Source: Trichoplax adhaerens (Eukaryota > Animalia > Placozoa). Taken from it: DNA of 64,000 bases. Where the stretch lies: assembly GCF_000150275.1 (NCBI RefSeq), contig NW_002060943.1, forward strand, positions 12,595,694-12,659,693. Reading direction: 5' to 3'. The translations under genes were made by a program, and so were the position numbers. Positions 322-61,411 of this stretch are shown one piece after another (the first letter of the stretch is position 1; the number at the start of each line of letters is the position of its first letter). Under the pieces are notes generated by a model. The model saw only the letters and a list, made by a program, of their open reading frames with translations. It was not told where the DNA came from and did not search any database.

Positions 322-1875
322 TCATCTAAGATACTCACCTAGATATGACCATAACTCGGCAAAAATCCAAGTGGAAAATAGTGTATTTACTTTATGATTT
401 AATTCAGTAGTACCTGGTGATGGCCCTTCCGTCAATGCGTCTGGTAGAATGTTAGGATCTTCCTGTTGTAATCGTTTGGCGATGTTAAACGACTTTTGCC
501 TCATCATTGAAGCTTCGTCATCTTTTTGCTGTTTCTCGTAGGCATTGGACATATTCTGATAGACTATTCCAACGATCGTATGATTCTCGGTGTATAAGTT
601 TAGATAGATATCGAGTGCTTTATTGTACATAATCAGAGCATCGTCAACGCGATTTTGGTAAGATAATACTAATCCTAAATTATTGTATAACTGAGCAACA
701 TCGGCAAGCTTGTCTCCGTTTACTTTCAGTTGAATCTTTAGGGAATTTTCATACATGAAGAAAGCTTTATCGCAATTATATTGGTGACGATAGATGTCAC
801 CGATACTAGTGTATGAATGAGCCACCTCTAGATGATTTTCTCCGTATAGTTTGAGACGAATTTTTAGAGCTTTGCCAAACATGGAGAGAGCTTCTTTATA
901 GGCAAATTGACGACAATGGATATCTCCCATATCATGGTATAACTGAGCAACATTGGAATGTTGGCATTCTTGTAATTTAAGTCGGATATTGAGCGCCTTT
1001 TGATGCATAGACAGAGCAAGTTCATATTGGCCTTGATGACGATAGGCTATTCCTATATTGTGGTAAGAATTGGCAATATCGAGAGGATTCTCACTTGCTC
1101 GTTCCGATTGAATACTTAACGCTTTTTCATACATTGAAATAGCTTTATCATACATTGATTGATTATCGTAAACTAGCCCGATATTATAGTATGAATGAGC
1201 TACACTGTCGTGTTTTTCTCCAAAAATTTCCACTCCAATATCGATCTTTTTTTGATACATGAGGAGAGCATCATCGTACTTTGATTGCTGAAAATAAACG
1301 TTTCCCATTTTCTGATAAATTTCGGCAACATCGGCATGATTCTCTCCGAGTTTGCTTAATTTAATAGGTAAAGCTTTTTGATACATTATAAGGGCATTGT
1401 CATAGGCATCTTGATCGTAATAGAGACAACCAAGAAGGAAATACGAGGTAGAAATTTCAAGATTGTCTTCATTTTGTAGTATTTCCTTCTTCATTTTCAG
1501 AGACTGGCCGAAATCTTCTATTGCTAAGTCGAATTGCCCCTGTAATCTCTTGCTTTCACCTTGTCTGTCTAGAATTCGAGCAAGTCCTAGATCGTCCGTC
1601 AACTTTTGGGCAATTTTGGAAATTTTTTGACATACTTGATTGACTTTCTTGTGTTTACATTCCTTTATGTAAGTATCAGCAATCTGAAGGTAAATTTCCA
1701 ACTGTACTTGATTGGAATCATTTGTGCGCGCGGGTAAATGTTGATGGTGGGAAAGAGCTCGTCGATAATATTTTCGAGCTTGTCGATAATCTCCATGAGT
1801 AAAACAACTTTGGCCCGCCCGACATAAAAATTCTATTTCTTCGCCAATCTCTGATTTATTTGCTGAATTTCCCAT
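322..1875 (-). CDS. Gene A: TPR-repeat protein (N-terminal helical cap plus 8 tandem 42-aa kinesin-light-chain/TPR_12-type repeats), putative N-myristoylation; probably exon 1 (1875-414) of a gene that continues left of the window
   Basis: 517-aa ORF starting MGNSANKS. 42-aa periodic units: LEISTSYFLLG, ADVAEIYQKMG, DSVAHSYYNIG, LDIANSYHNIG, SNVAQLYHDMG, LEVAHSYTSIG, ADVAQLYNNLG, TIVGIVYQNMS. A phase-1 donor CCAG|gtacta at 414/413 matches the phase-1 donors that end exon 1 in the paralogs. Confidence 0.85.
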   Translation of the reverse strand: MGNSANKSEIGEEIEFLCRAGQSCFTHGDYRQARKYYRRALSHHQHLPARTNDSNQVQLEIYLQIADTYIKECKHKKVNQVCQKISKIAQKLTDDLGLARILDRQGESKRLQGQFDLAIEDFGQSLKMKKEILQNEDNLEISTSYFLLGCLYYDQDAYDNALIMYQKALPIKLSKLGENHADVAEIYQKMGNVYFQQSKYDDALLMYQKKIDIGVEIFGEKHDSVAHSYYNIGLVYDNQSMYDKAISMYEKALSIQSERASENPLDIANSYHNIGIAYRHQGQYELALSMHQKALNIRLKLQECQHSNVAQLYHDMGDIHCRQFAYKEALSMFGKALKIRLKLYGENHLEVAHSYTSIGDIYRHQYNCDKAFFMYENSLKIQLKVNGDKLADVAQLYNNLGLVLSYQNRVDDALIMYNKALDIYLNLYTENHTIVGIVYQNMSNAYEKQQKDDEASMMRQKSFNIAKRLQQEDPNILPDALTEGPSPGTTELNHKVNTLFSTWIFAELWSYLGEYLR

Positions 1876-3368
1876 TAAAAATATGGGGACTGAGATGGTG
1901 ATTGCTCTGTTTTAATACAAGACTTTTCTTTCTTGGATCGTAATAACAAACTGAAAGTGGTGAAAATTTTTCACCTTCAATCTCTCAAGCAATGAATAAT
2001 ATTGCTTGAAAACAAATTACTCCTTTTCTCAGTTAATTTCATTGACGCTTTCACTAGAGCACAAACTTTTTCTATAGATATCAAAAGCGCATTTACTCAA
2101 TCATTTATAGGAATCAATTATAATTATAGTAGAGAATAATTATTACTATCGCACTTTAAGACCGACATTATGAGATATCGCAATTATCATTCTATCGACA
2201 ATGTTTTATTCCCCGACGGCGAATGGCATTTTTAATTAATCTAATTGTGCATTTATATTCAATCTAGATAATAGTCGAGACAATTCTTTCCTTTCCGATT
2301 ACAATTACTTTAATCGGATTTCAATGCAGAAAATGCGGAAGTAATATACTTATTGCATATCTTTATTATTGTCTAATAATAAAAATGTTTTTCCCCGTCA
2401 CAGCCATTGATGGAAGAATCATCATTTGTTCAAATCTAGAGTAATAAAGTTGGCAACGAACAATAATGTCCGAGAGAAAGTCAATCACGAAATCACTTTG
2501 GTCTTTAGTTTACTGTATTTAGATTTTAAAGGAACAGAAACATTTTAGACAAAAAAATAAAAATGGATTCGAGAGCATGTCTGAATGTAAAACTGTACAC
2601 TTAAGTTAATTGGAGATTCTGTTTAGAATCTATCGTCCATAGCTGGTATTCGATTATTCCTCGATGATTTTAGTCCTTTGATAGATATGCCATTAGAATG
2701 GATTTATGATTGACAGTGTCTGGGAGATTAAATGAACTAAATTGATCTATTGACATAGAGTAGATTGCAATAACGTGGTCGAAATGGATCATGGAGAATA
2801 TACCAAGTATGATGTATAATATTGCAATACCATATTATGCTACAACTATGGCAGCTATTTCAGTCAAGATTGAATTTTTATAAAGGACATGTCGATGATA
2901 GCTGGTTATTTTTTCTTATCAAGTGGTCAAGTTTAATTTTATTTAAAACTGAGGAATAAATGAGACTATGATTGTAACCATAATTCTATTTCCGCTATTG
3001 GCATAGCATAGCTGTAGTGAGCTCGGTACACTAATTGACAAACATTGTGAAATTGAAACATTGCACAGTTGAAAATATTTGTACAAGCCTTCTTTCCCAT
3101 GTCAATAGTGTATTTGCATTTAATTACCGTATTACATTGGTCACTAATTAACTAACTCAAATTATCTTCCATAGAAATAAATTCATTATTGGTGCCCACC
3201 GTAATTATAGATTTAAAAACTGAAAATTGTTCAATTATGTAATGATTAATTGCTAAATTCACAATCGTGAAAGTAAAAATAGAAATACTTAGCAATGTAT
3301 AATGTATATAGGCAACTGTGAAACCTTCAACAATACCTATAATAGCTTTGCAAAGTTTAAATAAATAC

Positions 3369-3418
3369 NNNNNNNNNNNNNNNNNNNNNNNNNNNNNNNN
3401 NNNNNNNNNNNNNNNNNN
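3369..3418. other. Assembly gap (50 N)
   Basis: Run of 50 N. Confidence 1.
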
Positions 3419-6400
3419 ACTAATTGGCAATAAGCAAAGAAAGCAGGGCGGAATGTTTTCCTTGCCTTTGATATGATCAACGAAAAGCTAAAACTGACTC
3501 AGTATTTTCTTCCGGAAACTATTTATTATAATATTTCATTAACTTACTCGTACATTGACCATTTTAGATCCGATAACTATATATATGTTATTAATGATTG
3601 CTAATAAATACTAATGTGGCTATTATGATAAGTGTCAAATGTTGCGATAACGATATTTGTTACGGTATACCAAATCTATACTGTACATTGCAAGCTATTT
3701 CGAGGATGTTCATAGAAAATAATTAAGTCGTCACGTTGATTATATCGGTTAGAGCCGCTAGATAGTAAGGTAATAGTAATATTTGTTATGCAAATATAGC
3801 TAAAGCAACTAAAAAAGAAGTTGTCTGAGTGTTTGTCGACTAGAAGACTTAATAAGCATTTAGTTTGCTAGTAGTGGATAAGAAGTACAAATAAATCCTG
3901 GGATTGAAGTTGCTGTTCATCAAATTACAGTAAACGGTATATTCTACACGAAGGGTATAGTTTGGGTCGTTACACCGGCATTAATTGTTTTCCTATAATT
4001 TGCTTTTAAATATTTGTAAGGATTTTGGAATTTAAATACTATAGGAAGATTAGACCTACTGAGCTAGGATAAGTATTGACGATAGGGTAAAAAATAAGCT
4101 GGCTGTATGAGTAGATCATAAAGTTGCTAAAGAAGAAAGTTTTGATCTAGTAGAATAGAGGAAATAGACTACAACTACCTCATCAATAGAGAAAAAGATA
4201 GCGCTTAAGAATTTGTAACTTAATCCTATTTAACGTATAGAAATGAAGTTCTATTAACTGAACTATTGACAGCCCTTCAACTCGTCGTGCAATTACTATT
4301 GATTAATCTATACAAACAGAATCGCTTTTCTTCACACTTACAATTATGATAGAATGGTTTTCATATGACGGTATCATACAAATTGAACATTGCTATTTTA
4401 CTGTTCGCTAGTACTGTTAGTATGAATCTTCAATTTTACCGTACATGGATTTGCTTACTGTAAATGAAATCTAACCCGCACGATATCTGTAATCTGTTGA
4501 CTGTAATTAGCAAGGTATCACTTACTACATAGATATTTTGGATATCCGCGCTTGAATCAACCGATATTTTCCATTACCTAGGATAGCTTAATAAATAGTT
4601 GCATGTATATTTCGTAACCCTTACTGTTTCAAAAATGACAAAAGGAAAGTAAAAGAGAGGTTAACTGTTTTACCTGGCATCTATTATATATTATTGGGCC
4701 TAGAGGAGGCGTGAAATGGAAGGATTAAGAGTGCGAATATGCAGCAAACCTCCTACACTTGCCCATACATAATACGAGTTGAAAAGTTGTGGGAGGGAAG
4801 TAAGGATGGTCAATTATGTCGATGATTCGGGAGAAGGCATCAAGGTCAAAGTAAAGCTTGCAAGGAATACCGGAAAAGAAAGCAATAAAACACACAAGTA
4901 AAGGGAACAACGAAAAGGCACGAGGAGAAAAAGAGACAAGAAAGAGGATTTACAACCAAAAATGTTGCAAATCTCCTTAACTAAAACGTTACGAATCAGT
5001 TTTATGTAGCGTTTCACAATAAGTTATTCATCTAAAGGTAAACCTAGAACCTTGAGATACCAAGAGAGTGCAATTATGCATATACTTATAGTACGTTTAT
5101 TACTAAAATAAAATTGTTAAACTTAATGCTGCTCATGAAGTATTAGTAATTATGAGACGTTAATATCAGCAAGGCTTATACATATAGAGTATGCGTAAGG
5201 AAAAGGATTTGCGCATAAGTTGGCTGAAGAGTTAAGAATAAGTTAGTTACGTGTAAAGAGTACGCATTGATGTCTACACTCCAGGCCAGCACGTGCAAGT
5301 AGGCTGGTGGAACTTTAGCAAGTCGCAAAATACTGTTAATAGTAGTCACACGGTATTAAAAGCAATGAATGACACGAATGAAAATATTGGCATTAATCTA
5401 TTTTACGTAGATTGATTTTTGTCCTTTTATTACGCTTTAGAAGCAATTCTGCTTAGAAGGAATGATAATTAATTTCTAGTGACTTGAAACTTAAAGCATA
5501 GAGAAAAATCCGATGTTAATTACATTATCTTTTCCTTAACTAGATTGCTTTATACTGATACAAATTATACTATATTCAAATATGACTTTATGTAAGACTT
5601 CATGACAGTCTACATTAATTAGGAAAAATACTAACCTTGCACTTCTTATGTACTTTGTAACATCTTTGCTCCAGAGCTAAAGTGTAGAACCGACTTTTTT
5701 TAACTAATATTAGTGTTTATGCTACAGCTGTAAATCGTTGACTGTACGTATGATTATATTTTGTTCTATAAGCCAATGTTGATGTATATTTTGGGAGTCA
5801 GATTACTTGCCATGTACAATATGTCTGTAACGTATCATCTTGCGTGGTTGTTAATATTTGAAGCTCAGAAAACAAGATGCCACCATTTTAAATATAATAA
5901 TTTTAGTCTCATATTACCAGGATTATAATGGCTTCTGTGACCAATCTAACATTATGAACTAACATCTAAGAAATACTATAGTACATATCTGATATTACGG
6001 CAACAGTACTCATTTGCTCTACATGCCATTAAGTATTAATGACGCATGATTCACGAGAGAAATCTTCTACCTCGTGATCAGCTATGCAAGTATTTGCTGA
6101 AACTGCAATGAGATATTTTTAGTTTGAGATAGAAACCTAAACTAAAATATGTAGTATTACTAAACCGATTAAAGATGGTATAGTTTGTGTAACAATGTCA
6201 GATTTATATGGTATATTAGCTACATATAGACAAAGTTAAATTAGAATTTTTACTAGCAGACAATCAGTTCGTTTTATATGCAGCAGTATTCAAAAAGAAT
6301 AATGTAATTATTTTTACAAAGGCTTTCTATGTTCACAATCATAATATTGATGCTCATTTTGAACGAAAGAATCGTTATTATTCGTCAAGAAAATTACGAG

Positions 6401-8493: not shown

Positions 8494-11400
8494 TTATAAA
8501 AGTTCTTCGGCGTCATCAGGCTTTCCGTTTAAGAATATTGTATATTTTAATGATTTATTTTACTTCAGGTATATTACGTGTAATATAAGAAAAGTTATAT
8601 TCGGTTTTAGCCTTACCAAAAATAAATAGCAGGACATGGCTTCTTTGACGTTATTCTTTTCATCAGACTCGAGAAGAATTATCTGGCAGAGCTCCGGTGG
8701 AGGAATTTCACTTACTGTGAATTTACACTTAAACATAATACTGGTCGCAAAACTAGTATGCCAGTTAAGGAATAAATCTTTCATGCAGGTTGTATTTGAA
8801 TCGATGGAGTCCTGAACTAAATGACTACTAATAAATTTTACTTTGTAGTAGCCGCCACGTAGAAATATTTCTTCATTTGCATCATTGATTAACTGATACA
8901 ATTTAAGTCTAGAATTCTGTTCAGGTCTGGACTGAACTCCTTTCTTGGTTATACTTATCTTCAAGAACAGAAAGGAGGAAGCTAACTGAATTAATTGAGC
9001 TTGAAATTGAATAGGATATTGCAAAGAAAGAGATGGTATAGGCAGATCGATCTTAATTAATTTTGCTAATGATTGATCAAAAATAGATTGGTCAATCAAG
9101 ACATTAATATTATCACTTTTAATGTAAAATGTTGAAAGTTGTTCGATGGAGAAAACAATACAAGGCTGCTCATGTTTGGTTTCAATTCGTTTATAATCCT
9201 TAGAATCGAATCTATATCCGCTTCTTTCTATGTTTTGGTCAAGCAGTGTTACTTCTGGACATTCCTTGGTACCATTCGAATCATAAACTTGCTGCGGTTG
9301 TAAAATAGGCAATTTTAATTTAGGTGACTTATCATTGCGGACATTAATCAGCAAATCATTCGGCTCTAGTTGAACTACTTGTAGCAGTAATTGGCCAGTT
9401 TTGCTTTCATGGTTATGATAACAGAATGTATCGCTGAAATAATATTTGACAGTAATAATAGTATCTTCCTTTAAACTATCAGCTGGGATATGGAATTCAA
9501 ATCCTGGAAGATTACTTAAGGTAATACAGTTGTCTTCCATGGCTTTGCAGTTTACGCTTTTACGATAGCATTTCATGGTAGCTGAAATTGGAACATCATC
9601 GATATATTTTAATAGTTGCACAAATTGAATACTAACTTTTATATTTTTTAAGTATTTAAAGTAAAAGCTAGAGATGTACTAGTAGAAAGCATAGAATTTC
9701 AGTTACCATTCTGTATGTCATTCTATCATAATATTAACAAATCAGGATACTCAAATTTAATTTGATAACGTCAAAACTAGTTCCAGTTATTACGGAAATT
9801 TTGAGAAAATAATCTAAGATAATTCAAGTTTAGGTAAATATTTTATGATCATTCTGATTTGTGCTTATGATATCATCGGATCATTTATTAACGGATATGT
9901 CATGTACATCCACTTGCCTCTTATTCGATGAGTAATTGCTATCGTTGCTAGTTGAACTAATTGATGTCCAGTTTTTCTAATTTCTTTTAACGAATTCATT
10001 AGTAAACTATCACAAAATAGAGTAAAACTTTTCTTGTTTAAGCATTTTAGAAAATATGTTAGGTAGAGTTTTCTTTCTTCTTCTATAGAAGTCTCAATTG
10101 ATATAGATTGATTCAAATCATAGATTTGCTTGGTAAATGGATTCCATAATGCAGCAGGAACAAATTTATTCCAATTATCGTCAATACTAACTACATCAAT
10201 GATTTGATCGATATCACTGTGTGTCGGGGATAGCTCCCAAATATTGTCTAAGTCGTGTTGTTACAATAAAAAAATAAGAAAATTAGATAAAATTAAAGCT
10301 TAAAATTACTACTCTACCAGTGATTCATGGAAATGCTTGTTAGTTTACCTCATTTGTTGATATATACTGTTATAATTAAATGCAGATGAAAAAAGCTAGG
10401 AAATATTGTAATTCTGCATATTGAAAGTTTAGTGGAATATCGAAAAAACTGCTTCTGTTAATTATTGATAGTATTTATCGTTTTAATTACTGTATTATTT
10501 GCTGATCAGTTATAGGGCTTAAAAATTTTAATTATGAGGTACTTCTGTTCAAAAATGACAATATGAAGATATCTCCTTACAACTATATTCGATTGCATAC
10601 TCAAGCTTTAGTCTGTACACATGATCATTAGTTTAGCTGGCGATCTTTTCCTTTTAAATGTTTACTTTAATCAATCAAGGCACATCTTAACTTCTAGTAC
10701 ATTAACAAACTGCCAATTAAAATCCTATTGCACGATTCTTTAATTCAAAATTACGTTAACCTTTTCAGTGATGTCATTTAAAGGACGCTACACTTAGATA
10801 TAACAGTAATTCAAAGAAAAACTCTTAAATTTTAATTTATAGCATACCCTTGACATTTACTTTGTTCCCTAGATTCCAATCGTCTAGAGCTTTAAAACTC
10901 ATGGGAGAGTAACATTCTTGGCATTTGATTTGTTGATAACCAAGACGTTGATGAACGTCGGTTATACCATTTAATCGCTGACATAGATCGCATTTAAGGT
11001 AAAATTGACCACGAATATTTTCGAATTTTGGCATTTTCTTATTTGTAATTGATATCAATTCCTCTAGCAAGACTGAATGTGGACTAAACTTATCAATAAA
11101 ATTTTTAACATTATGAACTAATGTATTTTTTGATGTAGAATTATCCAATATTTCATATTGATATTGCATTGCTACGGTGGATTTTTCTTTTTTGACTACA
11201 ATACAATATTGGTTATTTAAAAAAAAATATTTAGCATAACGATGGAAGAACTGGACTAATGGATTTCCCCATTCTTTGAGACATGATGATATAAGATCTC
11301 GAAAAAGATTATCTGGAATATAAGGCACTTGATCTTGTACATTATATCCTACATGAAGCCAGTCTGATTTTTCGTAGGGTTTTATTGTATTAGGTTCCTC

Positions 11401-13977
11401 TTCAACATATTGAGGTAGTACGTAAGGAATAAAATAGCCACGATTGTCTTGATATTGCTTATCGGAATCACTGATTTCGGATATAATGCCATAAATTTTT
11501 AAGACATCAATGATCATTTTTCTCTCCATATCATCGAAGTTAAAATGGCTAGCAAGGCTATTTAACCATTCGCAGTTTATTTTTTTCAAATAATTTATTT
11601 GGCCTAATTCGTCATGAAATTCCATGTCCTTATATCGCTGTGGATACCATTTTGAAGCATGACCAGCTATGTTTACAAGCCACTGAAGATCAGTAACAAT
11701 AATTCCTTCATTTTGACAATATAGAATGTCGCCAGCATCATTTAAATAGGATAACATATCAAGAAAGAAATTTTCATCTTCATATAATCCAATATCTCGC
11801 GATAGTTGGCGTATATCATCCACTTTCATTATTTTATGAATTGAATAACCCATTATATTATCAAAAAGATTTATTGATAATTCTTGGTTGTGATGCTTCT
11901 GAACAGCTTCGTGTAATATTTGCCCCATGAAGAGCCATTTTGCCGGTATGTTTTCCTGAGAAAGTGGTAGAGACTGTAGAAACTGTCTTATCATAGCCAT
12001 TAGTTCATTTCTACACTGTCGGCGATTATTAATGATATCCAAATGATTATCTTGAAGATTGGAATTGAAAATAATTTTTGAAGAGACTACATGACTTTTT
12101 AAGAAAGGTAAGGATTTTAATAAGCCTTGAATTAATTGCTCAAATTGACAAGTTTGTTCTTCATGGATTTTGCCTTGGTGTAAACCGACCAAAATTATAA
12201 TTGGTAACGAATATTCTTGAGTTTGCTCGTTCATAGTTATGCTGAGCCGGTTTTGAGAGGTATCTTTACCAATTATGGTAACCAGCCATTCCTTGAAAGT
12301 TTCTAGATATGAGATTCTTTCTGATGAATAATGCCAATTTTGCAAAGTCTCATTTATTGCATCAGTCATATTTAAGGGAATAATATATAAGTTGCTTTTA
12401 GGAATGAACGGATAGTAGGCAATAGAATGGGCCACAGAGATATTATTACTGCAAAATTTGATAGCCTGAGAAGGTTTATTTGCAGTATTATTATTCCAAG
12501 TGAAGTATGATTGAAGAGACTCATTGAGTTGTGAATTTTGCCTATAAAGGCGAATTAATTTTTCGAATGGTGTTATAAAATTAGAGAATGAGTCATTAAT
12601 TTTGGGCGTAGTTATTGTTTCGGTACTTTGATAATTTCTATTTACTTGTCCGTATTCTTCCTCCTTAGTAACGTTTGTTCGTGATTTTGAGAAAGTATTT
12701 CCATTACTTTCCTCACCACAGCACGTATTTTTAGCAAATTTTGTAACTAAAATATTCTTTAGCAAGGTGTATGTCACGAAGGTAAAAAGAAATACTTGAT
12801 CATCGTTCAATTTACATGCAACATCATCCGTAAAGCTAATTCCCGTATGTGCAGCACCAGTTAGTTGCTTTTCAATTCTATATGCAGAAATATTAAGCAT
12901 TTCTATCAAAGATTGCGTACAAATACTTGTATATCTAGCACTCATAACGCTAATTCTATTCAGATTATTGTAAAATTTAGCATTGCCCAAAGCCCTGATG
13001 CAAGCTTTCAAAAATTCCTTGTTGCCTGTAGGTGATATGAATAAAACGAAATTGAGCTAATATACGAAAAGATAATTAAAGATTTACTGTATTGACAGAT
13101 TATTTATGATCAATAATTAAAATTATTATTACAAGTCCAAACGTACGCAATTTGATTTTTTTATTCACTCTAATCGCAAAATAGAATACGTTCTAACACC
13201 ACTAAAAGAATCTTACCGACAAGACAATCTGATAAAATAGTTTTTTGATTCGATGATAACAAATCGTTAGAAGTATCTTCAAATAGAAAGGATGTCACTA
13301 ACGTATAACATATTTATTATAACACCAATTAAAAACAACAGCTAAAAATCTCTCTTTCTTAGATTAAAACTGAAATGAACTCAGCTTTATTGATAAAAAA
13401 CGTTCTTTGTGCTGGTTAAATTATATGAGGTTAAAATATTGCACTTGGGTTTACGCATTAAACTTATAGATTGGCTTGGAGTTACTTACAATGTATACTT
13501 TGGCAGTTTTTTCCATTTAATTGACATTTTTGATTCAAGCCTCCTAATGAAAAATTAATTGAATTCTGTTAATTGGTATAAATATTAGTGATTTCTACTC
13601 ATCCTTAAAATAAATTAATGCTGGCCGTTATTACCAGATAACCTTGCTGTTTCGTCTTGCCTATTCAAGCAAAAAGCGATATGTTTCCCGGAGTTTATTT
13701 TTCTGGCTATTTGTTCTGCTTTCAAACAGCAGAAGCAAGCATGATGATATTTCTTCTGCTTGATATAGATGTTGATTAAGATTAGAAACAGATCACAATA
13801 AAAATGATCATCGTACGGAGTTTCATTAGTTAAAATCTTGACGGCATCGACTAGCTTTTCGATTTCAGGCAAGATTTCAATCGGTTGATCAATATCTTGA
13901 TTGTAACTTTGATTTGCAGATAAGATGAGGGAATTAATCTCATCTATTATTAAAGATTTCGTTGATTTATTACCCAT
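8494..13977 (-). CDS. Gene B: multi-exon Roco-family protein, myristoyl/TPR cap - degenerate Roc - COR - Zn ribbon - CARD-like - ZU5 - UPA-like (~1318 aa)
   Basis: Exons 13977-13635, 13543-13490, 13276-13217, 13025-10848, 10247-9918, 9581-8617, 8520-8494. All join in frame; the internal exons before ZU5 (54, 60, 2178, 330 nt) are phase 1-1. COR motifs: IPAKWL, LSYLNDAGDILY, IIVTDLQWLVN, YFIPYVLP, YIPDNLFRDLI. ZU5 motif GFEFHIPADSL...VVQLEP. Confidence 0.75.
8617..9581 (-). CDS. Gene B exon 6: ZU5 + UPA-like domain
   Basis: Within ORF 8560..9621. Acceptor tttcag|CT, donor TTG|gtaagg. Homologous to ORFs 23934, 30112 and 60150. Confidence 0.8.
10848..13025 (-). CDS. Gene B exon 4: Roc-like (degenerate G motifs) + COR + CxxC...CxxC
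   Basis: ORF 10837..13011. Acceptor tacag|GC at 13025, donor AAGG|gtatgc at 10848. Roco-type motif order is recognisable (ISVMSARYTSICTQSL, HTGISF, YPFIPKSNLYII, IILVGLHQG, then the COR motifs). Confidence 0.8.
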
Positions 13978-43300: not shown

Positions 43301-43556
43301 AATAGGCCGCTTTGGCTTCGGTTGCCATTCCATGTCGGGTATAAATTTGAAAGCTCCAAAAATAACAACCGAATACGATTCGGCGTAATCTCCAATCGAA
43401 GGTAAGTCTTGCTGAAGATTGAATTTCATCGATCACTTTGTCGAAATAGGAATTAGCCAGGTGCGGGTTTCCTTCATCATGGCGCCATCGACAAGCATCC
43501 ACATAGAGATCATAAATTTTTTGGGTATTAACCAACTTGAGAGATTTGTTTGCCAT
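40398..43556 (-). CDS. Gene E: short divergent TPR cap - disordered linker - UPA-like domain, no ZU5 (~452 aa)
   Basis: ATG at 43556 (MANKSLK). Exons 43556-42749 (donor AAAG|gtatac, phase 1), 41242-40794 (acceptor atctctaag|), 40701-40635, and a tentative last exon 40432-40398. The C-terminus YEVRF..L....RC...ELCQI aligns with the UPA-like domain of the other genes. Confidence 0.7.
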
Positions 43557-43786
43557 TTTTTTCTTGGAACTAGTAGACGTTGAAAAAATGTCTAGACGTT
43601 TAGAATTTTTTTTTTCAAGGGTTACATAACCCACTAAATGAGCTATGTTGATGCGTATTCCAACTGACTTCTTGGATAAACTTTGGATTGAATGATAAGA
43701 GTAAACCGATAATGATTCTAATAGCAATTTTGGGGTTCGTCGAAGATGTGAATGTCCGTTGCCGGAGCAGCCGCTTGGAATGTTCG

Positions 43787-44006
43787 TACAGTACAGTAGC
43801 GCAGTGTACTATCAGGTCTACTTTTGCACTAATGGCTAGAATGAAATTAAATGGACGCTTAAGTACTGTAAAAAAAAACGACGAGCGAGTCCTGCAGTGC
43901 TGGAATACTGTATACTTTACAGTACATTGTACTGCAAACTCTTTATCAATCTTGTCCTTGTACGGTACTTTACAGTACTGTAAATTCCAAGCCGGACTTC
44001 CGGAAG
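43787..44006. promoter_or_regulatory. Putative promoter region of gene E with a TACAGTA/TACTGTA cluster and an ETS-type site
   Basis: Seven TAC(A/T)GTA plus one TACGGTA in ~200 bp. ACTTCCGGAAG (overlapping opposite-strand CCGGAAG cores) at 43996-44006. Lies 230-450 bp upstream of the ATG. Confidence 0.35.
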
Positions 44007-47000
44007 GTTGATACATAGTTTACAGAAATGCTTGCATGTTCATTAGTTCATTTTAGACTATTCTCGTATGGTCTAATGTTAATAGTAATGATGAACTGGT
44101 GTACTGTATAGCGATGGCGACCGTATGCTGTATTCAGAACACTTGGGTCTCTAAAATGCATTCCATGATAGACCAGAAAAATTTGTTTATAATGAAAGGA
44201 AACTGACGTCTTGTACACATGGTGTAATGTTTTGCAAAGAAGCCATGTATTGTACCTTGGAAAAGGTACAGTTGCACCCCACTCCGTCACTTATTTACTG
44301 CAATTTCATTTATTGTAAAGTGATCGACTTAAAAATCGTAACTTGTGCCCTACTATTCAATATGGTAAGAGGGAATACAAAACCAATTGCATTACAATGC
44401 AAGTAGTAAATTATTCGCCTACACATTACGCAGATACCGGCTCAATTATTGAATCGCGTTTAACTTCAAGCTACTGTACTAGACCGTTCACTCATGACAG
44501 AACATACTTGAGCTTTATCGATAGCTAGTGATCACGCAAACCTTAGTGAAAACTAGTTTATTGGTAACATTTATTATATCATCCGTCCGCCCATAAATTT
44601 ATTTCGTATTCAAATAATAACTCTATTCAATATACAGTATTCCTAAAACAATAGACCGTTACCGTCACTTTTGTATACTGTAGTATGCAATACTGTCTAC
44701 GATAGCACTGCATGAGGTAAAGTGGGAAGGAAGCGCGCCAATATTACAGTAAATTCAACATTCCAATGTTGATCAATAATAATACTATTCATAAAGAAAT
44801 AAATCGATGAAAATTATTTGACGGTTTACAAGCGATCAGGTGATTTTTTGACTTGTTGACATTTCAATTACTGCAATACAAGCTTTTGTATCTATAGTAT
44901 ACAGCATTATTATTGATGTTCAAACTGGAGAATATTTATAAGAACTTTAAGAAAAAATGTTATACCAACTCGTGACAGAGATGTTATTATAGCATTGCTG
45001 CTATTCAACAGTGGATAAACTAATCAATAGATTATCAAGATTTGCATCTTGTATGAACGGAACTTTAAAGTGTTTCAACCACAAAAACAATCAGAATAGC
45101 AATTGATTTATTAGTATATTATTTAACAATTCTTCTTACAAGATTAATAATCTTGTACAATTAAAGTTTAAAGACAGAGATGACGTGAAGTCGCGAATGC
45201 CATCCTGTTTTATTCAGTAGACCATTCTTCCTACATAATTGCAGATTCAAAGTTTCTAAGAATTCGCATTTACAGTCCGAAAAATTAACAAATGCGCAAA
45301 CACATAGCACCGCTCCTACGTTCAATATTATCGTGTTTATTCAAACGTATGAATTATGGTCATGATCTGTATAGAATGGTAGTCATAGCTTAGAAGTTAT
45401 TCTGACCAATTAGTTAATTATGAACTACTGGGCAGAAAACGAACTGCATAATATAATATTGATCAAATTCAAACACTCATTATAGGTCAGTAATAGCTGT
45501 TTACTTAGATATAGTGACACTTACAAGCCTACTCTTGAGAATCTGAGACATGATTGTTGATTACGGTAGAGTAGCTCAGTCAATAACAGGTAATTAGATC
45601 ATTTATTGCCATTTTTATTGATACAAGCACATACATGTGAATAAATGAAAATCTAATCAACATTTGACGTCAGAAAGGAACTATGTCAATGCTGGCTAAT
45701 CATTTGATGGTTATTATTAAGTATCATCTGATCATATTTATTTCACGGACTACAAAGCAGGCACTGTTCAGTCATAATTGTCGAATAATTACTGTATGGT
45801 ACCGTTGGTACGAGTACCTGTTTGCTTGGAATAACCAGGTAATGCCTCATTATTTTAAGACTGTCAATTGTTTATCGAAATTGACTAATAATATACAAAA
45901 AGTGATGGCCCTTCAAGTAGCAATTGCAACATGGCTGAAGTCAAGATCGTAGCTGAATCACTGCCTAGCGTAAGTTATGCATAAAGTTACTCCTCCTTCC
46001 TATGCCGAAAATAAAAATTTTATCCATGTTTGATGGCAATTTAATTGTGGTGTGGTTCTTTATTCGGACAAGATGCAGTTGGACTTTACGGAGAAAGTGT
46101 ATTTTTGGCGAAAGCTTTTGGCGTTCTGCCTTGCAATTACTAGACATTTACCAAGGATATCAATATCTTAATTCTTTCGATCCTATCACCTGATCGTAAG
46201 AATGAATTTCCAAGTGGTAAATTTTTTATGTTACATGGCAATTGTAATGAAATCTTTCGATAGAAGGAGGGAAGCTATCTTTCAACGATTAGAATGCACG
46301 TGAAATATTTGAAAGCATGTGATCAGAAAATAGAGAGTAAATTATGTATCTATAAATATTTATACTTGATTAATAAAAGTAGAAATAGATTCTAAACTCA
46401 TCATCTTGTAGCACCTTTCACCTTTTACTGTACTTTCATGAATTTTTTTGGATGTAGTCATAATACTCGTACCGTAGCTTTATAACACTTGTACAATAAT
46501 TTTTATTCTTATCACCATGTAATTACATTATTTTTAACAATTTATAATTACTGTATGCATTATTGTATATATAATTTATAGAATCGCTTTCGATAAATAA
46601 TAAGACTTGGCGTGTGTTTGTAAGATAAATAACAACAATTGTTGTACTGCGAAGAAACTAGTCAGCCACTGTCAATAATATCCGAATAGACAAAATTACG
46701 TACACTTTATTACAATGCTTGCACGCATAATTCACTATTATGCTAATATTAATTGCAATAAGAAAGCCCATTTTATACAACAGCCATTGACATACTGATA
46801 ATGTATAATATTTTGTGAATAACCACTTATTCTTGCGATAGCTAGTTGAAGTGTATGTTCTTAAGAAATAAAGCAAAAAATTTTGGTGTAGAATGCCAAA
46901 GCTTGATCAAGAAGTCTACGGTATCTCATATTCCTAGCCATCATACCGGTATATTTAGTCTAAATTCTTCTGTAGTACGTGTTTAGCAGTTTTCGCCAAG

Positions 47001-47583: not shown

Positions 47584-49942
47584 ATGACGGATTCAAATGT
47601 TCGTGATCTTTATCAGAGAGCATGTCAGAGCTATGATAAAAATGGCTTTACTGAAGCTAATTTATGGTTCGAGGAAGTTATAAAATCTATCAAAAGAGAA
47701 ACTCCAGATACTGATTTACTGCAAATGAAGTTCGATAGTTATTTATATATTTCCAAATACTATGGCCTACGAGGAGATTTAGAAAAAGCCAAAAATGCCT
47801 ACCGCAACGCTCACAATATCTATCAAGTGTTCGTTCAATCAGTGGGAAATTGTCACGGAAAATGTAACATAAATAAAGTCGATGAATTAAAAGCTAGCCT
47901 GGCCAAAGTTGTAAAAAATCTGAACTCCAATTTAAAACGTTCATCGCAAGATGTAATTAAGGCCAATATCTATGCCTACTTAGGAGCTGTATATGAATGC
48001 CAATCCAGATATTATGAAGCTTGTTCTAATTATTATAAAGCATATGAAATAAAGAAAAATATTCCAAGCGAAAACAGCGATGCTGTTGCCAAGTTGTTAG
48101 TTTACATTCAGTCCCTTCCTTCACACCAGTCAAATTTCACCAACACTTTGCAAAACAATCAACAGCAGCGTGGTAACTACGAAAAACCAAGTGAAACTAT
48201 TGATGAAAAAGTAACACTTTTAGATAATAAAACAGCTTGCAAAGAGACTGAATCAAATCCTCAGAATACATCAGTTGGCAACCATATGAAGCAATTAGGA
48301 ACAGAGAATCGATTGAATCAAATAAATATCAACTATAATACTGCTAGGTGTTCTTCAGCATCACAGCCGGATCATTTTCGCGGTATAGTACAAAATTCAT
48401 CATTCTATCTATATTTTGATTTTATTTGTCTTTTTTTTTCACCTTATATAAATATACTCGTAGAACACTTTTTCATCTAGAATTTGCTGTCTTAACAGAC
48501 TGTAAATTGCATAAATTAATAGTAGAAAACTGAATAATTAAATACTAGTTTATGTGTATACAGCACGAACAATATTTAGGGATCTAGATTCAACATAAAT
48601 AATTAAAATTGACTTATACGCAGGGAGAGTTAATTAACACGCGTACAGTTACTATTTATATAGTGCTACACTCATGTACTGGTACCGCATTGCAGTGATT
48701 ATTCCAACTTGACCACTACTATCTAACACTTTCAATGATATCTTGCCGGAAAAATTAATTTTGTGTAACATTTACTACTCGAGGATTTTATTTATGCAAT
48801 ATTCTCAGCAATGCTTAATATCCAACTTGCGAATACCGTCATGGGCAGCTAGAATTACTGTACTTTATCTACTGTAGTAGTCGGTGAAACAGTATAAATG
48901 CAGAATTACTTTTGTTAATTAACAACTTCTGTGAGAGAATACGAGTAATTACGGTATCTTCTGTATTTAATATCATACCAGTTCCAGTAATCCACCAAAC
49001 GATTAGAGCCGAATTATACCTTACTATCTGCTCGATTTATATCTCTAAGGTTTAAATAGCACATCTACCCAGCAAGATTTTGGTGAAAGCATTGCACGGA
49101 CTAGTACATGTGTGAATCCTGCTCTATGTCGACCATCCATACAATCTGAAACCACTACTGAATCAGATGGACGCTTCGAATTTCATTCTCATCTTTTAGT
49201 TTTATCGCAGGATATATTTAATGTGAAATTAAAATTCGTGAGACTGGGCCACGTAGATGAATCTAAACCTTTCCCTTCAAAATTGAGATATTTAAAGGTT
49301 GAAAACAATTTCATGGAATACATTACACTAAATGATAGAGATAGTTATGGAATACGATTTGTACCAAGTTGTTTAATATTGAATGAGTTGGCAAGTGAAA
49401 AAAATAATCTGGACAGACCTCTTACACGAGATAATAAGGACATTATCACTATTACTTTACGATGCAAGATACAAGACAACCCCAAGGACTATGCAGAATT
49501 ATGCCAGATCTTCATTATAAATTCCCTAAATACAGTGATCAAGTCGTGCTTCCTTTACAAGGTAAGATGCTCGTATCAGAACTAGGGCTAATGTGAACTT
49601 TTTGAATCGGATTCTTTACTGAATTCTCTTATCCTGTAATATATCTTTTTCGCAACAACAGCCAGATGATGCTATCTTTGATCGCCCAGTTGAGAAATCA
49701 TCTAAAAAAGGTAAATATTTGCTTCTCAAATAACTGACTAGTCAATCTACGCTTTATGCCGCAGACGCGTACAGTAAAACTTGATAACTATTATGAACAA
49801 AAATATTGTTGATATCCATTATAATTAATTATAATTACTGTACAAGTGTACATCCGAGTTTTATTTGCTAACTGAGTACGGCATGTATTTAGTACTTCGT
49901 AATAGTATATTTCCAGCTAGATGTCTAAGCACCGACATTTAA
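47584..49942 (+). CDS. Gene F: short TPR - disordered linker - UPA-like domain, no ZU5 (~461 aa); inverted paralog of gene E
   Basis: Exons 47584-48382 (donor CGCG|gtatag, phase 1), 49050-49561 (acceptor atctctaag|, same as in E), 49662-49710, and a tentative last exon 49917-49942 with AATAAA at 49981. TPR motif ANIYAYLGAVYECQSRYYEACSNYYKAYEI. Confidence 0.72.
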
Positions 49943-52164: not shown

Positions 52165-52313
52165 CCAACAGGTAGGTTTAGTTTTGAAGGCACTTTTGAT
52201 ACAATCCAAATCGATCAAAACTAAACCTACCTGTTGACACAGTTCAATTCTATCAAAACTAAACCTACCTGTTGACACAGTGCAATTCTATCAAAACGAA
52301 ACCTACCTGTTGG
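52165..52313. repeat. Fold-back / MITE-like repeat: 23-bp inverted arm plus 2.6 tandem copies of a 38-bp unit
   Basis: CCAACAGGTAGGTTTAGTTTTGA (52165-52187) is the reverse complement of the core of the units at 52214-52251, 52252-52289 and 52290-52313. Confidence 0.8.
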
Positions 52314-53515: not shown

Positions 53516-53799
53516 CCCAAAAAGCATTAAGTGACCGTAGCAAAGAATTTTGTAGAATAGTCCCTGTAGACGAAATCATAGGACAACTGAAAAATGATGG
53601 AATTATAAGTGATCATCAAGGTAAAGAACTGAAGATCTTGAAGCATGACTCAGATAAACGGGACCAACTGTTAACTATACTAAAGAAGGAAAGGAGCGGA
53701 GAAGATTTTGAGAAATTTTGCGATGTACTTACCGAGAATTCTGTCACAACTGTTCAGAAATTTGGGAAGAAATTAAGAGAAGCAGCAGCAAACTATTGA
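53516..53799 (+). CDS. Exon X: terminal exon encoding a CARD (death-fold) domain; upstream exon unidentified
   Basis: Phase-1 acceptor aattctag|CC. Encodes QKALSDRSKEFCRIVPVDEIIGQLKNDGIISDHQ...KRDQLLTILKKERSGEDFEKFCDVLTENS..., the CARD pattern (L...G.I/L, LL..L, F..F...L). No Met in the exon. Confidence 0.8.
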
Positions 53800-56700: not shown

Positions 56701-57922
56701 AAAGTGAAGTATTTATACCTATTACTCATTAGTAACTTATTTGTATAGCTGAGAGTTAGTTCAACTACGATAGGTCCCTAAGTTAGTTGGGAACACGAGT
56801 ACTAGTGAAGATAGTGTTTAAGACCCGTTTTCTAGTTGCAAAGGAGATTTGTTACAGGGTAGTAATTACGTTGCACGATGAAGAAATATTTAATCGATAA
56901 GAGCTCTAGAGCGGTCATAATTTTTAATCTAATTCATTGACCACAGCAAACTTTGACGCTAATAACCGCGTTATAGATTACAATCATAACAATAAACTCA
57001 AACGTATTTCAATATCCGCGTTCTAATTGTAATTATAGCTGTGCCAAATTGCACAATGAGTAAATCGCGCCGATGAAAACAAAAAAATTCTGCTATGACT
57101 AAAATTTATGGAATGCATTCTAATATCACTGCAAACTGTACGAACATATTGTCGTCGCCCATCAATATCCATACTATATTAAAAAATTTAAACGAGTATA
57201 ATCCACCAGTACTATTTGAAAAAGCTATCAAAATGATTCACTTGCCACTTGCTAGGTTAACTATATCGTTTATTAACACATGGAGCGTAAGGTACTAGGT
57301 TATACGCTTATAAAAAGAATACTCGTATGCGTATGTTTATCGCTTATCTAGCTACGGAATAAGGCAATAGTTACCAGATTTATTCAGTCACTTGTTGATT
57401 AGCTCTTAATAGCGTAACGATTCTTTAATTCTCAGTAATGATATTCACAATGCACTAATAAGGAACAATGAAACAGTGGTATAGCATTTGGCGGAACAAT
57501 GAAATATCATCGGAATGAAAAAATATCTTTATAGAAAGTTCGATGGGAATAACAGATGTGTAGAGTATATAATACTTTATCCATATGCCGTAAGCAGTGA
57601 TTAAAGGTCCTGTATTGTTAATGATAAGCAAATACTAAATAATGGGCCTAACGTTATTATTATAGCTTTTATAATTATAATAATTTACTATTGTCCAAAA
57701 GATTATCAAAGAATTGTGCTACTGCTCAAGGCCAAACTAGAAAAACAATAATATTTAACTTACAGTATGCTATAGAAGTTAATCTAGAGAGCAATTTCAA
57801 CGTTGCAACATTCGAATCGTTCCGCATTGCTAATCTCCAGCGGTGTTTCCCTTCGCTTTACTAAATTTTGAAAATTGATGGATGCATAAGAAAAATGGAC
57901 CTGAGGCCGATTTGATATTAAT

Positions 57923-60900
57923 ATGAACGATAAATCATCGGAACATTCATTTATTCCAACTGTTCCTAATTTTATGCAAACTCATACAAACGAATCATAT
58001 CAGCAAGATGATCATCATCTAACGGAGTCTACCAGTAAAAAATTTACAGAACCTATCTCTGTCGACTCTATAAATTGTCAAGACACTGATCAATCTCAAA
58101 TTAAGAAATGCTATACATCGGCTAATGAATTTATAAAATATCAAAATGGTAAGTGCCCTTGATAATATAGGGATTTCTCGATCCTGAATTAGACCTAAAT
58201 AGGATATATGTTTCTATAGTTTTGCAGTGAGGCTATTTAGGTCAATAGTTATTAAAGGATATTACCCTTCCTGGCAGTAATATGTTCAAATAGACCAAAT
58301 AGTTATCTGGAAATATTAGATTAGAAAGTTGCAGGATAAAAACAGAAAATGGGTAGCAAGGAGCAGCCTTAAGCTTAGCTTTAAATTTGTCTTAGTTAAT
58401 GTTTATTAACAGTAAGTATCGGCAATAATGGAATGATTGCCTCGAAAGCAATCTACCTTCAGTATTACATTTAAAGATTGACCGAAGCACGATGGCTACA
58501 CCACTCACCTGTATAGAAAGAACGATCAATAACTATTCTATTCAATAATTGTATTAAATTAGCACTATATGTAACAATCTGAACTGTAAGTAAAAATTGC
58601 GTAAAAGTAGCGTTAAATAATTAAGGCCAAACTTTCAGCTTATACGTATGCGAATTTTTTGTTCCATTATGTAGTGATTCGCTTTTGCCCTTGCTAATGA
58701 TCAGTAATGATATTCTGATTGATTTCGCCGAATTTGAGTGAAAGGAATCATTAAACAAAAAATTCTAACTAAAATATTTGGGGCACGATATTTTTAATAG
58801 TTTTGTGTATATGCTGTATCGAAGTTTATTAAGTAACTCAAGATTTGGTAATGTGGCAATAGGGTGATATCTACCAATATAACTAAACTTCATTGCAAGA
58901 TATTAAAAATCAGTTCTTATTCACAGGAAGACGGTTAATAAAATACGTCGCATCTATTCTGATGCGAATTTGATTTGTAACAGCTTTCTGGTGTACCTTG
59001 TCCGATAATAATCAAACCGATATCTGTATCTTTTAAAGTTATGATGTTCTCATATTAACCTTTTAAACCATTAATTTACGTAAAAATTTATAGGATCCCA
59101 AGCCACCCGAGTCAGAAACAATGGATGCCAAATTGAAGATAACAATACTGATGGTAAGTGTCCGCACAATAGCGTATCTTAAACAATTTTAATCAGAGTA
59201 AGTAATTTGAATCAATTTATGCATATGGTTTTTTATATCATGAAATAATGTACCATGGAATATGTATTAATGATTTAATAACTTATGGTACAGATGCAAG
59301 CAATAACTTTCATGAAATAGCAAAAAGTATCTATCAGAATCGAGCTGACCATTCACCAATTTTAGATTACTGTACTGAAAAAGGTAATTATAACTTTTGC
59401 TATAAGAGAAGTTAATAGGAAAATAATGTAAAACTTAATGCCTTATAAGAAAAACCAATTTAATTATAATATTAGCGAGCTATTAGAGAAATATATATTT
59501 TATATTTAACCAAACTGTTGTTAACCACAGCGCTACGCTTTTAAGACTTACGACTTCGCTATTAGCTAAGGATGCATAATGCAAATTAGAGAATTTTGCA
59601 TGTACTGATAACTGAGGCTCTATTAAATTTCTAGAAAGTGATCTGGAATTAATTTTGGCTGATTGTGATATTCACGAAATAATTAGCGACATTTTGCCCG
59701 ATTACTGGACCGATATTGACGTATTCAATGAACTCACTAAGTACATTCGGAATGAATTGGTTATTTCTGTACAAGAACAGCTGGTGTCTTTAAAATCTTT
59801 AACCCAACAAAGAGATGAAATATATGTTTTAATATTGCTAAGATGCATAGGCCAGTTACAATTTTATAAGTTAGTCTCCACTTTGATTGCAAGTTCACTA
59901 GAAAAGGTCAAGGCAATCGGTTACCAGCTACAGCGACGTGCAGTACTAAGGCTTAACGAGCGATATGAAGGTATGTCTACAGATTACTTTATTCACCAAT
60001 TATATTTATGTATTACTCTTAGTTCATTCAGAATCTTATCACTTTCGGAACAATCTCCATCTTAGCTAATCTCACTTGATACATTCACGATATAGATCAA
60101 AAAATAAACATTACGTGAATTATATTAATACTATATATTTTATGCAGTTGTGACCAAATATCCCAATGTGAAATTTCTATGCAAAGCTGATAAAGATAAT
60201 ATCATTAAAATGGATACCTTATCTGGCTTCGAATTAATAATCCCAGCAAAATGTCTACAAACAGACACAGAGATCATGGTAACTGTTTATTATGCAGATT
60301 CTTTATATGCCTATGGCATTAAAAATATTAATGTAACGTTGCTATCCCCAATAATCAGGATTGAACCTAATAATTTACAGTTTATAATAAATGATAAATA
60401 CCCGACTTTACAACTACCAGTTCTTCAGTCCATGCAATTGAAACCATCTAATTTGCCTAAGTCTGAGCAGAAAAATTCAATACAACTATACCATGGAACG
60501 AGTCTATATATAGAATGGTCAGCTAAAAATTTAAAAAATGCTTTAATAAACATAGAAGAAGATCATAATCTTTTCAAAATCAATCATTGTGGATTTTTCT
60601 GCGCTGTAATAAACCAACCAAAACCTCTATTTGACGAATCTGCTGTTTCTAGTCAGCCTTTTGTTGATCTTACATTACAACAGCAAATCGATTTTCAGGT
60701 ATTTTTGTCCATTACGACCAAAGGGACAGCTTTTGTGGACATAGTTATTACACGAAAAGGCATTAAATACCAACCTAACCGGCTTAAAACGATTAAATTA
60801 CATGAATTAGTAAATGATATGGAAGATGTTACTCGCTTAAGGAATGGTTATTATCAGATTAAATTTCTGTCCAGTTATCTGATTCATAATTCAGTTGATT

Positions 60901-61411
60901 CAAGAGATAAGATTAAGGATATCTGCATTAACTGGAATGCTAGAAATAGCTATGTGATTTCCTATCGATGTCAACTTTCTGATACAGTCAATTTTCCTGG
61001 TGATCTTTGTCAAATAATTGTTCAAAGCAAAGGAATAAATTGCCGGCCAATTGAGGCTTTGTCAAGTTTTATATTTTTAGTAAGTTAAAGTATTACAAGC
61101 TCGGTTCAAGATTTATATTGGTTTTAAACTCGATTTGTTTATTCCATGGAATCGACAGTAATTTTTTTCAATAATTCAATTTTACAGCCAGATGGATTGG
61201 ATGAAAAAGACTTACAAAAGTTCTTAGCCACAGGTAATTTATATATTTTCGTGTAGTGATATGTTTTTATTGAAAACAATTTGCTAAAGTGGAGTCATAC
61301 TATTCAGTACCGTTCAATTCATATTAAATAAGTTATGATTTAATGCAATAAAATAGTGAGCTATTTTAATATCGTAATAGACTAATAAATTTTCTAGATA
61401 TATCTATATAA
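57923..61411 (+). CDS. Gene G: low-complexity leader - CARD-like - ZU5 - UPA-like protein (~567 aa); inverted paralog of gene D
   Basis: Exons 57923-58148, 59094-59153, 59294-59383, 59635-59970, 60148-61079, 61188-61233, 61398-61411. All GT-AG and in frame. ZU5 motif GFELIIPAKCL...LLSPIIRIEP. Confidence 0.78.

Follow-up and report, generated by a model that had tools for sequence, protein, structure and literature searches.

What does a tandem cluster of genes that share one beta-rich module, each behind a different front end, do in a placozoan? The PIDDosome and the NLRP1/CARD8 inflammasomes have ZU5-UPA modules beside death folds at their core, and the question arises from a 64,000-nucleotide stretch of Trichoplax adhaerens (C1414:12,595,694-12,659,693), hereafter the window, which is AT-rich eukaryotic DNA (G+C 28-40%) and holds a tandem cluster of seven genes, A to G, and one isolated CARD exon (Table 1). 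The public names of the cluster genes are hypothetical proteins or "kinesin light chain" only. We propose that the cluster encodes a subfamily of non-cleaving ZU5-UPA scaffold proteins, made by local duplication and exon shuffling, that takes part in placozoan death-fold signalling, with the window as part of a larger array, a reading that we hold to be probable, if well short of certain. The anatomy is solid, and the function is inferred.

A shared module of the ZU5-UPA type

Four paralogous exons of about 300 residues, in genes B (8563-9621, minus strand), C (23937-24830, minus), D (30115-31044, minus) and G (60150-61085, plus), align over their whole length at 28-62% identity, with D and G at 62%, and the gene D exon has twenty matches in its own genome. 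Two exons of about 120 residues, in genes E (40773-41126, minus) and F (49112-49582, plus), align solely to the last third of the long ones, in a region that includes the RC...ELCQI and SS.(L/F) motifs. A profile of the long exons, the A2 profile, finds six places in the six frames of the window (B, C, D, E, F and G) and nothing else, E and F matching at positions 178-292 only; it also matches a gene 3 kb beyond the window (E 1.3e-114). An earlier note on this DNA had described a beta-type domain of about 130 residues at the end of six genes. The domain is found in six genes, B to G, and four of them have the full module of about 300 residues, but it is not the 3' end of the gene. In each of the six genes the UPA exon runs up to a phase-0 GTAAG donor, conserved in its place in the alignment, and the Trichoplax sp. 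H2 model of gene D has two more small exons after the UPA; the UPA exon is thus not the last one. In gene C, the public model reads through to a stop at 23934, and the conserved donor CAA/GTAAGT lies at 24021.

Single-sequence searches of the ZU5-UPA exons against Pfam and PDB gave a best ZU5 match at E 0.022 and no PDB match, and the identity of the domain came from an exhaustive profile search and from structure prediction. First of all, a 12-sequence profile searched against 1.84 billion representatives found 98 proteins at E <= 1e-3. The 21 best of these match over their full length, and those looked up are Trichoplax proteins or ENA/Logan sequences. The distant matches cover profile positions 1-200, and in a sample of ten Pfam finds ZU5 in all ten, Death in seven and LRR in seven, which is the architecture of PIDD1; such LRR-ZU5-Death proteins are reached down to E 6e-24. 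Second, an AlphaFold2 (AF2) model of the public gene D protein, built from a 71-row alignment, has predicted local distance difference test (pLDDT) values of mostly 80-97 over residues 210-515 and contains beta domains at residues 208-364 and 384-516. Foldseek with this model returned ankyrin-B ZU5-ZU5-UPA-DD first (4d8o, E 1.3e-11), followed by UNC5b (3g5b, 6.6e-10), the rat NLRP1 FIIND (7crw, 4.3e-5) and then the human CARD8 FIIND. Residues 208-364 superpose on the ankyrin ZU5 domain 3f59_A (VIA-align Z 13.6, root-mean-square deviation 2.4 A over 124 residues), and two-domain alignments over 208-516 were obtained with 4d8o (Z 13.7, 252 residues), 7crw_A (Z 10.8, 228), CARD8 7jn7_B (Z 9.7, 222) and UNC5b 3g5b (Z 9.6, 233). 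UPA on its own gives generic beta-sandwich matches only (Z ~7). The fold and profile matches thus identify the shared module as a ZU5-UPA supramodule, and the ZU5/UPA-like fold that had been suggested for the shared domain is borne out. By model and profile, genes B, C, D and G carry the full ZU5-UPA, and E and F, in which the profile finds no ZU5, UPA alone behind a short TPR-like cap. No Death or CARD domain was found after the UPA in any window gene, the annotated tail of gene D being a helix of 24 residues.

TPR front ends

Pfam TPR_12 (cut-off 30.1 bits) matches three of the open reading frames, 322-1875 (minus) in gene A with 247.9 bits, 25225-26256 (minus) in gene C with 90.1 bits and 47584-48477 (plus) in gene F with 31.4 bits, the last one weak and only just above the cut-off. 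The long TPR arrays that the earlier note gave to C and, as probable, to A are thus found in both, but the shared domain is missing from A: no ZU5 or UPA is detected for it in the window, and the A2, A4 and A5 profiles have no match in the 8.7 kb past the left end. The H2 orthologue of gene C, RDD37831.1, is auto-named 'Kinesin light chain'. The gene E cap has no Pfam match of its own and is tied to the gene F cap by 30% identity over 143 residues (E 2.3e-7), and the short TPR previously assigned to E and F holds on these grounds. A, B, C, E and F are related to one another over their first 115-170 residues (A-C, E 1e-17; A-B, 1e-8; E-F, 2.3e-7; C-F, 1.8e-4), which suggests that B and E bear the same kind of helical cap, the TPR link of these two caps being pairwise similarity to A and F only. 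Genes A (1855-1875, minus) and B (13957-13977, minus) start MGN(S/K)..K(S), a pattern that by eye fits N-myristoylation (Gly2, with a small or hydroxyl residue at position 6); no start of this type is seen in C to G.

CARD exons

CARD-like exons precede the ZU5 in B, D and G and form a divergent set (D-G 51%, D-B 24% identity). Compared by hhalign with the CARD exon family, the set reaches 91% probability (E 1e-6), and the hidden Markov model of the family scores it at E 3e-4 to 9e-4. The AF2 model of the gene D domain (pLDDT 75.7), built from an alignment seeded with true CARDs, has death folds as 47 of its 50 best matches among 48,161 chains, with the CED-3 CARD (Z 8.4, 2.5 A over 89 residues) and the Dronc CARD (Z 8.1) as the best. 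We read the upstream exons of B, D and G as divergent CARDs, with the caveat that the alignment behind the model was CARD-seeded. In gene G, the predicted join of the two exons falls at the residues of the annotated CARD-to-ZU5 junction of gene D (...E V x T x Y P), in phase 1.

The isolated CARD exon has 59 matches in its own genome, with up to 46% identity to paralogues. On its own it has no Pfam CARD match at E <= 0.1, and its assignment comes through family members, 18 of the 24 aligned family exons matching Pfam CARD (best 3.1e-10), and through the family profile, which finds the PDB CARDs of CED-3 (1e-4), RAIDD and Apaf-1. Of the CARD assignments first made by eye, that of the orphan exon is thereby secured by its family, and that of B, D and G is favoured by hhalign and by the death-fold structure matches, but not by Foldseek at a significant level. 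We take the isolated exon most probably to be a relic, or else to belong to a gene that has gone unrecognised. No Roc-COR relic was found near it. A direct join that would make it the last exon of gene F is ruled out, the donor of F being in phase 0 and the CARD acceptors in phase 1 only; this exclusion covers direct joins and not one through an unseen small exon. An open frame of 85 codons at 57905-58159 (plus), polar-rich and containing MNDKSSEHSF..., may be the disordered leader exon of gene G, and it has no detectable similarity to the gene D leader.

A pseudo-Roco in gene B

The Roc-COR exon of gene B has 64 matches in its own genome, the best paralogues at E 2e-96. Gene B itself matches neither Roc nor COR-A in Pfam. 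Five of the paralogous exons match COR-A (best 4.4e-13, 49.8 bits against a cut-off of 35.3) and Roc (1.2e-8, 35.6 bits against 27), and COR after Roc is found in gene B by transitive homology through them. Its ESM Atlas neighbours are Roc/COR-A clusters (features 0.95, structure TM 0.58-0.64), including Roc/COR-A/Death and Roc/COR-A/CARD. The paralogues carry GK[ST]S (G1), DFGG (G3) and SHGD (G4), whereas gene B has GNKEF, SNNI and LHQG and an insertion between G1 and G3. The P-loop of Trichoplax Rocos is split by an intron, and Roc-COR exons thus begin at GK[ST]S. This alignment supports the view, already put forward in the earlier note, that gene B encodes a putative pseudo-Roco, a Roc-COR that would be GTPase-dead. 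At the end of its COR (10861-10990, minus) lies a CxxC-x19-CxxC element (KCDLCQ...KCQECY) that is kept in the paralogous Roc-COR exons, where weak zinc-ribbon/zf-CHY Pfam matches coincide with it; it looks like a conserved zinc-ribbon tail of the Trichoplax Roco family.

The Roc-COR exon can be joined to the CARD-like exon from donor AAGG/GTATGC at 10848 to acceptor cttag/AC at 10247 (phase 1, in frame), and the CARD-like to the ZU5-UPA exon from 9914 to 9631 (phase 2, in frame). The JGI model ends before the CARD-like exon, at a TAA three codons past the usable donor. We consider it fairly likely that Roc-COR, CARD-like and ZU5-UPA exons make up one gene. A search for homologous proteins returned for D and B their own models only, and for the gene B ZU5-UPA exon nothing. 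Genome-wide there are at least 60 single-exon Roc-COR units and about 59 CARD exons, some of them side by side (e.g. C1414:12748119-12751077, C1414:12073194-12076668 and C1404:1.70-1.81 Mb), so the pairing of Roc-COR then CARD is not peculiar to this cluster. Other CARD exons adjoin NB-ARC exons, e.g. C1411:7881291-7882710.

What the cluster may do

The window would be a segment of a larger placozoan death-fold gene array, formed by local duplication and exon shuffling, in which a distinct subfamily of the PIDD/ankyrin/UNC5-type ZU5-UPA module may have been copied six times, each copy being given a different front end: a TPR array in C; a short TPR cap with UPA only in E and F; a disordered leader and divergent CARD in D and G; and, in B, a TPR cap, a GTPase-dead Roc-COR and the same divergent CARD. 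The products would serve in the cytoplasm, as scaffolds or adaptors in a signalling network of the cell-death or stress type. Their TPR parts may bind ligands or partners, their CARDs may recruit other CARD proteins by homotypic contact, and the ZU5-UPA would serve constitutively for packing or oligomerisation, as it does in ankyrin and UNC5. This constitutive role is proposed because D and G lack the self-cleavage nucleophile and B and C have an altered motif, evidence against a switch that works by self-cleavage as in PIDD or NLRP1/CARD8.

Several observations weigh against this proposal. A hydroxyl residue is kept at the nucleophile position in B (QLS) and C (QFT), so self-cleavage is possible there. 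Foldseek with the gene D CARD-like model finds nothing at E <= 0.001, the CARD-like fold depends on an alignment seeded with true CARDs, and for a bundle of helices a Z of 8.4 is not high. Reading frame was the guide in placing the joins of E, F and G and, in B, those from Roc-COR to CARD-like and on to ZU5-UPA. In gene B, the CARD-to-ZU5 junction is in phase 2, as opposed to phase 1 in D and G, and the 3' part of B could thus be in decay or form a gene of its own; the gene B ZU5-UPA exon is contained in no annotated protein of 194-618 residues, and the JGI model stops short of the CARD-like exon. Furthermore, ZU5-UPA proteins work in the cytoskeleton and in receptors as well, and the fold does not by itself imply a part in death or immunity.

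The last point leads to the alternative that survives best, which is unlikely all the same: that the proteins are membrane or cytoskeleton scaffolds with no death or immune role, the ZU5-UPA binding partners of the spectrin-like or receptor kind, as do ankyrin, ZO-1 and UNC5, and the TPR parts being partner or cargo adaptors of the KLC/NPHP3 kind. Among known systems, ankyrin and UNC5 (ZU5-UPA-DD) indeed provide the best structural matches (4d8o, 3f59, 3g5b), those of the ankyrin ZU5 domain reaching Z 13.6, and they too are non-cleaving, as the window modules look to be; the TPRs are of the KLC/NPHP3 type, and A and B start with MGN, which by eye fits N-myristoylation. The window genes, on the other hand, lack a C-terminal death domain, ankyrin repeats and a netrin-receptor ectodomain, and their identity to ankyrin/UNC5 is just 10-18%. 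CARDs are present in three members, and outside the window the genome has paralogues with a fused Death domain. Moreover, the closest relatives by sequence outside Placozoa, according to the A2 profile, are PIDD1-type LRR-ZU5-Death proteins, and a lineage-specific tandem expansion is more like immune or death gene families than housekeeping scaffolds. PIDD1 itself (LRR-ZU5-ZU5-UPA-Death, the PIDDosome core) resembles the window genes in having ZU5 then UPA, linked to a death-fold domain. It differs in that the window genes have no LRR, a single ZU5 and TPR as the repeat module, and in that their death fold is an N-terminal CARD or absent and their HFS motif lost or altered.

PIDD, NLRP1 and CARD8 cleave at (H/S)-F-S, and the last Ser is required (PMC3210808). 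At the aligned position gene D has HFA, G has HCG, B has QLS and C has QFT; most paralogues elsewhere in the genome keep HFS (SHFSDY). Genes D and G, with no hydroxyl nucleophile, cannot use (H/S)-F-S self-cleavage, and its use in B and C, where the motif is altered, is doubtful. The absent nucleophile in D and G and the altered motif in B and C make FIIND-like activation unlikely. The alternative that relies on it is an NLR-free sensor-adaptor kit, in which activation would lead to processing or unlocking of the ZU5-UPA, with the CARD oligomerised by the UPA as in NLRP1/CARD8 or PIDD1. FIIND-CARD of NLRP1/CARD8 does combine ZU5-UPA and CARD in one protein and shares the two-domain fold (7crw and 7jn7, Z 10.8 and 9.7), UPA is known to promote the formation of CARD filaments (PMC7794386), a related TPR-ZU5-UPA-CARD protein exists (P0014), B and C have Ser or Thr at the nucleophile position, and the window has no NACHT or NB-ARC. 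The order in the window is, however, reversed (CARD-ZU5-UPA), so that cleavage would release no UPA-CARD fragment; D and G have Ala and Gly in place of the nucleophile Ser of the SF/S motif, the need for which was shown in PMC3210808; NACHT and LRR are lacking, and a death fold is wholly absent from C, E and F. Given the domain order and the altered cleavage site, we regard such a switch as less likely than the non-cleaving scaffold reading, and in itself as improbable. The analogy to FIIND and inflammasomes drawn in the earlier note is weakened accordingly, the death fold being N-terminal and not C-terminal to the ZU5-UPA and the x-F-S motif lost or altered, and its description of the cluster as NLR-free stands: whole-genome six-frame searches with PF00931 and PF05729 gave no NB-ARC or NACHT match within C1414:12595694-12659693, and at least 56 NB-ARC and at least 9 NACHT matches elsewhere in the genome.

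Origin of the subfamily

In a quick maximum-likelihood tree with SH-aLRT support, the six window copies and the proteins P0018, P0020 and P0022 form one clade (97), apart from the HFS/Death-linked Trichoplax copies and from PIDD-like proteins, with D+G (98) and E+F (99) as sister pairs. The window copies differ from the Death-linked Trichoplax ZU5-UPA copies in being a clade of their own, in having no C-terminal death fold and in including UPA-only and Roco-linked forms. In related proteins the module is joined to Death at either end, to TPR, or to TPR and a C-terminal CARD (P0014). P0018 and P0022 are only 26-32% identical to D and G, which suggests that the subfamily is old. Between D and G the ratio of nonsynonymous to synonymous substitution is about 0.17 in the CARD-like and ZU5-UPA exons alike (NG86, with dS near saturation), which points to purifying selection between these coding sequences. 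That most members are young duplicates drifting to pseudogenes with no joint function, their odd architectures being due to exon shuffling or misfused models, is the most improbable of the alternatives, since the isolated CARD exon without a partner exon, the absence of any G motif from the gene B Roc and the absence of the gene B 3' exons from public models stand against domain exons that are all open, a splice donor conserved in six of six genes, the low D-G ratio, the age suggested by P0018 and P0022, and the intactness of C and D in Trichoplax sp. H2.

The Rocos with death folds, such as DAPK1 and the invertebrate Roc-COR-Death or Roc-COR-CARD expansions, are a further point of comparison, the gene B exon belonging to a family of at least 60 Trichoplax Roc-COR exons. 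Gene B differs from them in lacking the G1, G3 and G4 motifs that its paralogues keep, and it appears to have a TPR cap in front and ZU5-UPA behind. We could not find four of the module orders described: TPR-ZU5-UPA, TPR-UPA, CARD-ZU5-UPA and pseudo-Roco-CARD-ZU5-UPA. This agrees with the earlier remark that the architectures were not recognised from characterised proteins. In the literature searched, no link of Trichoplax with ZU5, UPA, FIIND or Roco was found, and the main placozoan immunity survey does not mention ZU5. Placozoan CARD-caspases and many Apaf-1-like genes have been described (PMC6321704).

A more ambitious reading is an NLR-independent placozoan death-fold system, in which TPR-(ZU5-)UPA sensors, CARD-ZU5-UPA adaptors and a GTPase-dead Roco scaffold would assemble via non-cleaving UPA and feed CARD-caspases. 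We regard it as unlikely. If it is true, one of the simplest animals would have built, independently, a counterpart to the PIDDosome or the CARD8 inflammasome. The cluster bears on how such platforms first arose, as it has the same parts, in a placozoan, recombined into four orders. Should the proteins interact, the roles of ZU5 and UPA without self-cleavage could be studied in a small, tractable system; failing that, the cluster still illustrates clearly how exons are shuffled inside a lineage-specific death-fold expansion.

Gene models, assembly gap and neighbouring sequence

TRIADDRAFT_52777 and TRIADDRAFT_52778 are identical to open reading frames of the window, and TrispH2_011038 of Trichoplax sp. 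H2 is 99% identical. The models of C, D and the N-terminal part of B rest on public annotations, and the public models P0009 and P0001 have the same exon joins as those given here for C (two exons) and D (six). The joins of E, F and G were drawn from continuity of frame, and no donor was located for the first exons of E and F. Spliced models were searched exon by exon, and whole-protein work used the database proteins P0001, P0002 and P0009.

Table 1. Features of the window (positions from its first nucleotide; a slash marks an exon border)
Feature	Positions	Strand	Basis and remarks
Gene A	322-1875	-	Single 517-codon open reading frame, KLC/NPHP3-type TPR repeats, starts MGNSANKS; Pfam TPR_12 E 6e-75, 8 stretches
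Assembly gap	3369-3418		N-run in non-coding DNA between gene A start and gene B end
Gene B ZU5-UPA exon, QLS at cleavage position	8617-9631	-	A2 profile E 9.4e-97; end donor TTG/GTAAGG
Gene B CARD-like exon	9914-10247	-	CARD-family profile E 2.9e-4; open frame without ATG before the domain
Gene B Roc-COR exon, 724 codons, degenerate GTP-binding motifs	10848-13029	-	Paralogy, Atlas neighbours, motif alignment
Gene B small exons after exon 1	13491-13544, 13215-13298	-	P0002 = TRIADDRAFT_52777
Gene B exon 1, N-terminal helical TPR-type cap, starts MGNKSTKS	13621-13977	-	P0002 = TRIADDRAFT_52777 maps here; 27% identity to gene A N-terminus, E 1e-8
Gene C exon 2, ZU5-UPA, QFT at cleavage position	23937-24896	-	Public model
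Gene C exon 1, TPR array	25267-26256	-	P0009 = TRIADDRAFT_52778, 100% identical; Pfam TPR_12 E 1.1e-25
Gene D	29495-32931	-	P0001 = TrispH2_011038, 539 residues, 99% identical; six exons
Gene D exons: ZU5-UPA (HFA); short helical tail	31047-30121; 30010-29963 + 29521-29495	-	Public H2 model, AF2
Gene D exons: disordered leader; next exon; CARD-like	32931-32704; 31798-31739; 31549-31214	-	Public H2 model
Gene E UPA-only exon, within this open frame	40794-41243	-	A2 profile positions 180-292 only, E 1.9e-9; end donor AGG/GTAAGA
Gene E first exon, TPR-like cap from MANKSLKL, then low-complexity linker	42735-43556	-	Similarity to gene F cap
Gene F first exon, short TPR cap + linker	47584-48480	+	Pfam TPR_12 E 2.2e-7
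Gene F UPA-only exon, within this open frame	49049-49561	+	A2 profile positions 178-291, E 3.8e-7; end donor AAG/GTAAGA, phase 0
Isolated CARD exon, own stop	53516-53796	+	CARD exon family of ~59; phase-1 acceptor ttctag/CC
Gene G CARD-like exon, within this open frame	59616-59970	+	Donor GAAG/GTATGT, phase 1
Gene G ZU5-UPA exon, HCG at cleavage position	60148-61079	+	Acceptor tgcag/TT; end donor TTA/GTAAGT

The assembly gap sits in the 6.7-kb stretch from the gene A ATG (1875, minus) to the gene B stop (8560). It is intergenic, no gene model depends on it, and no open reading frame of more than 92 residues and no family-profile match touches it. An unplaced contig, C594 (1685 nt; L046), matches the window on the opposite strand at 2846-3366 (99%) and 5282-6073 (99.7%); between the two blocks it has 370 nt without counterpart in the window, which join window position 3366 to 5282. 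From this match pattern the gap lies at a non-coding haplotype indel, and C594 is another haplotype, or a variant of the assembly, in which about 1.9 kb around the gap is missing.

The next gene beyond A, about 3.4-4.9 kb past the left end of the window (L043:3756-5282, minus), is a 509-codon open reading frame that by eye has a carboxylesterase/cholinesterase-type look. The G+C maximum of the window (0.35-0.40, at 41000-44000) coincides with the first exon and intron of gene E, near which an overlapping open reading frame of 133 codons (43615-44016, minus) has no family match. Between gene F and the isolated CARD exon, in a G+C-richer, C-skewed stretch, lies a tandem repeat (52196-52312) with a 38-nt unit in 3.1 copies and 91% matches.

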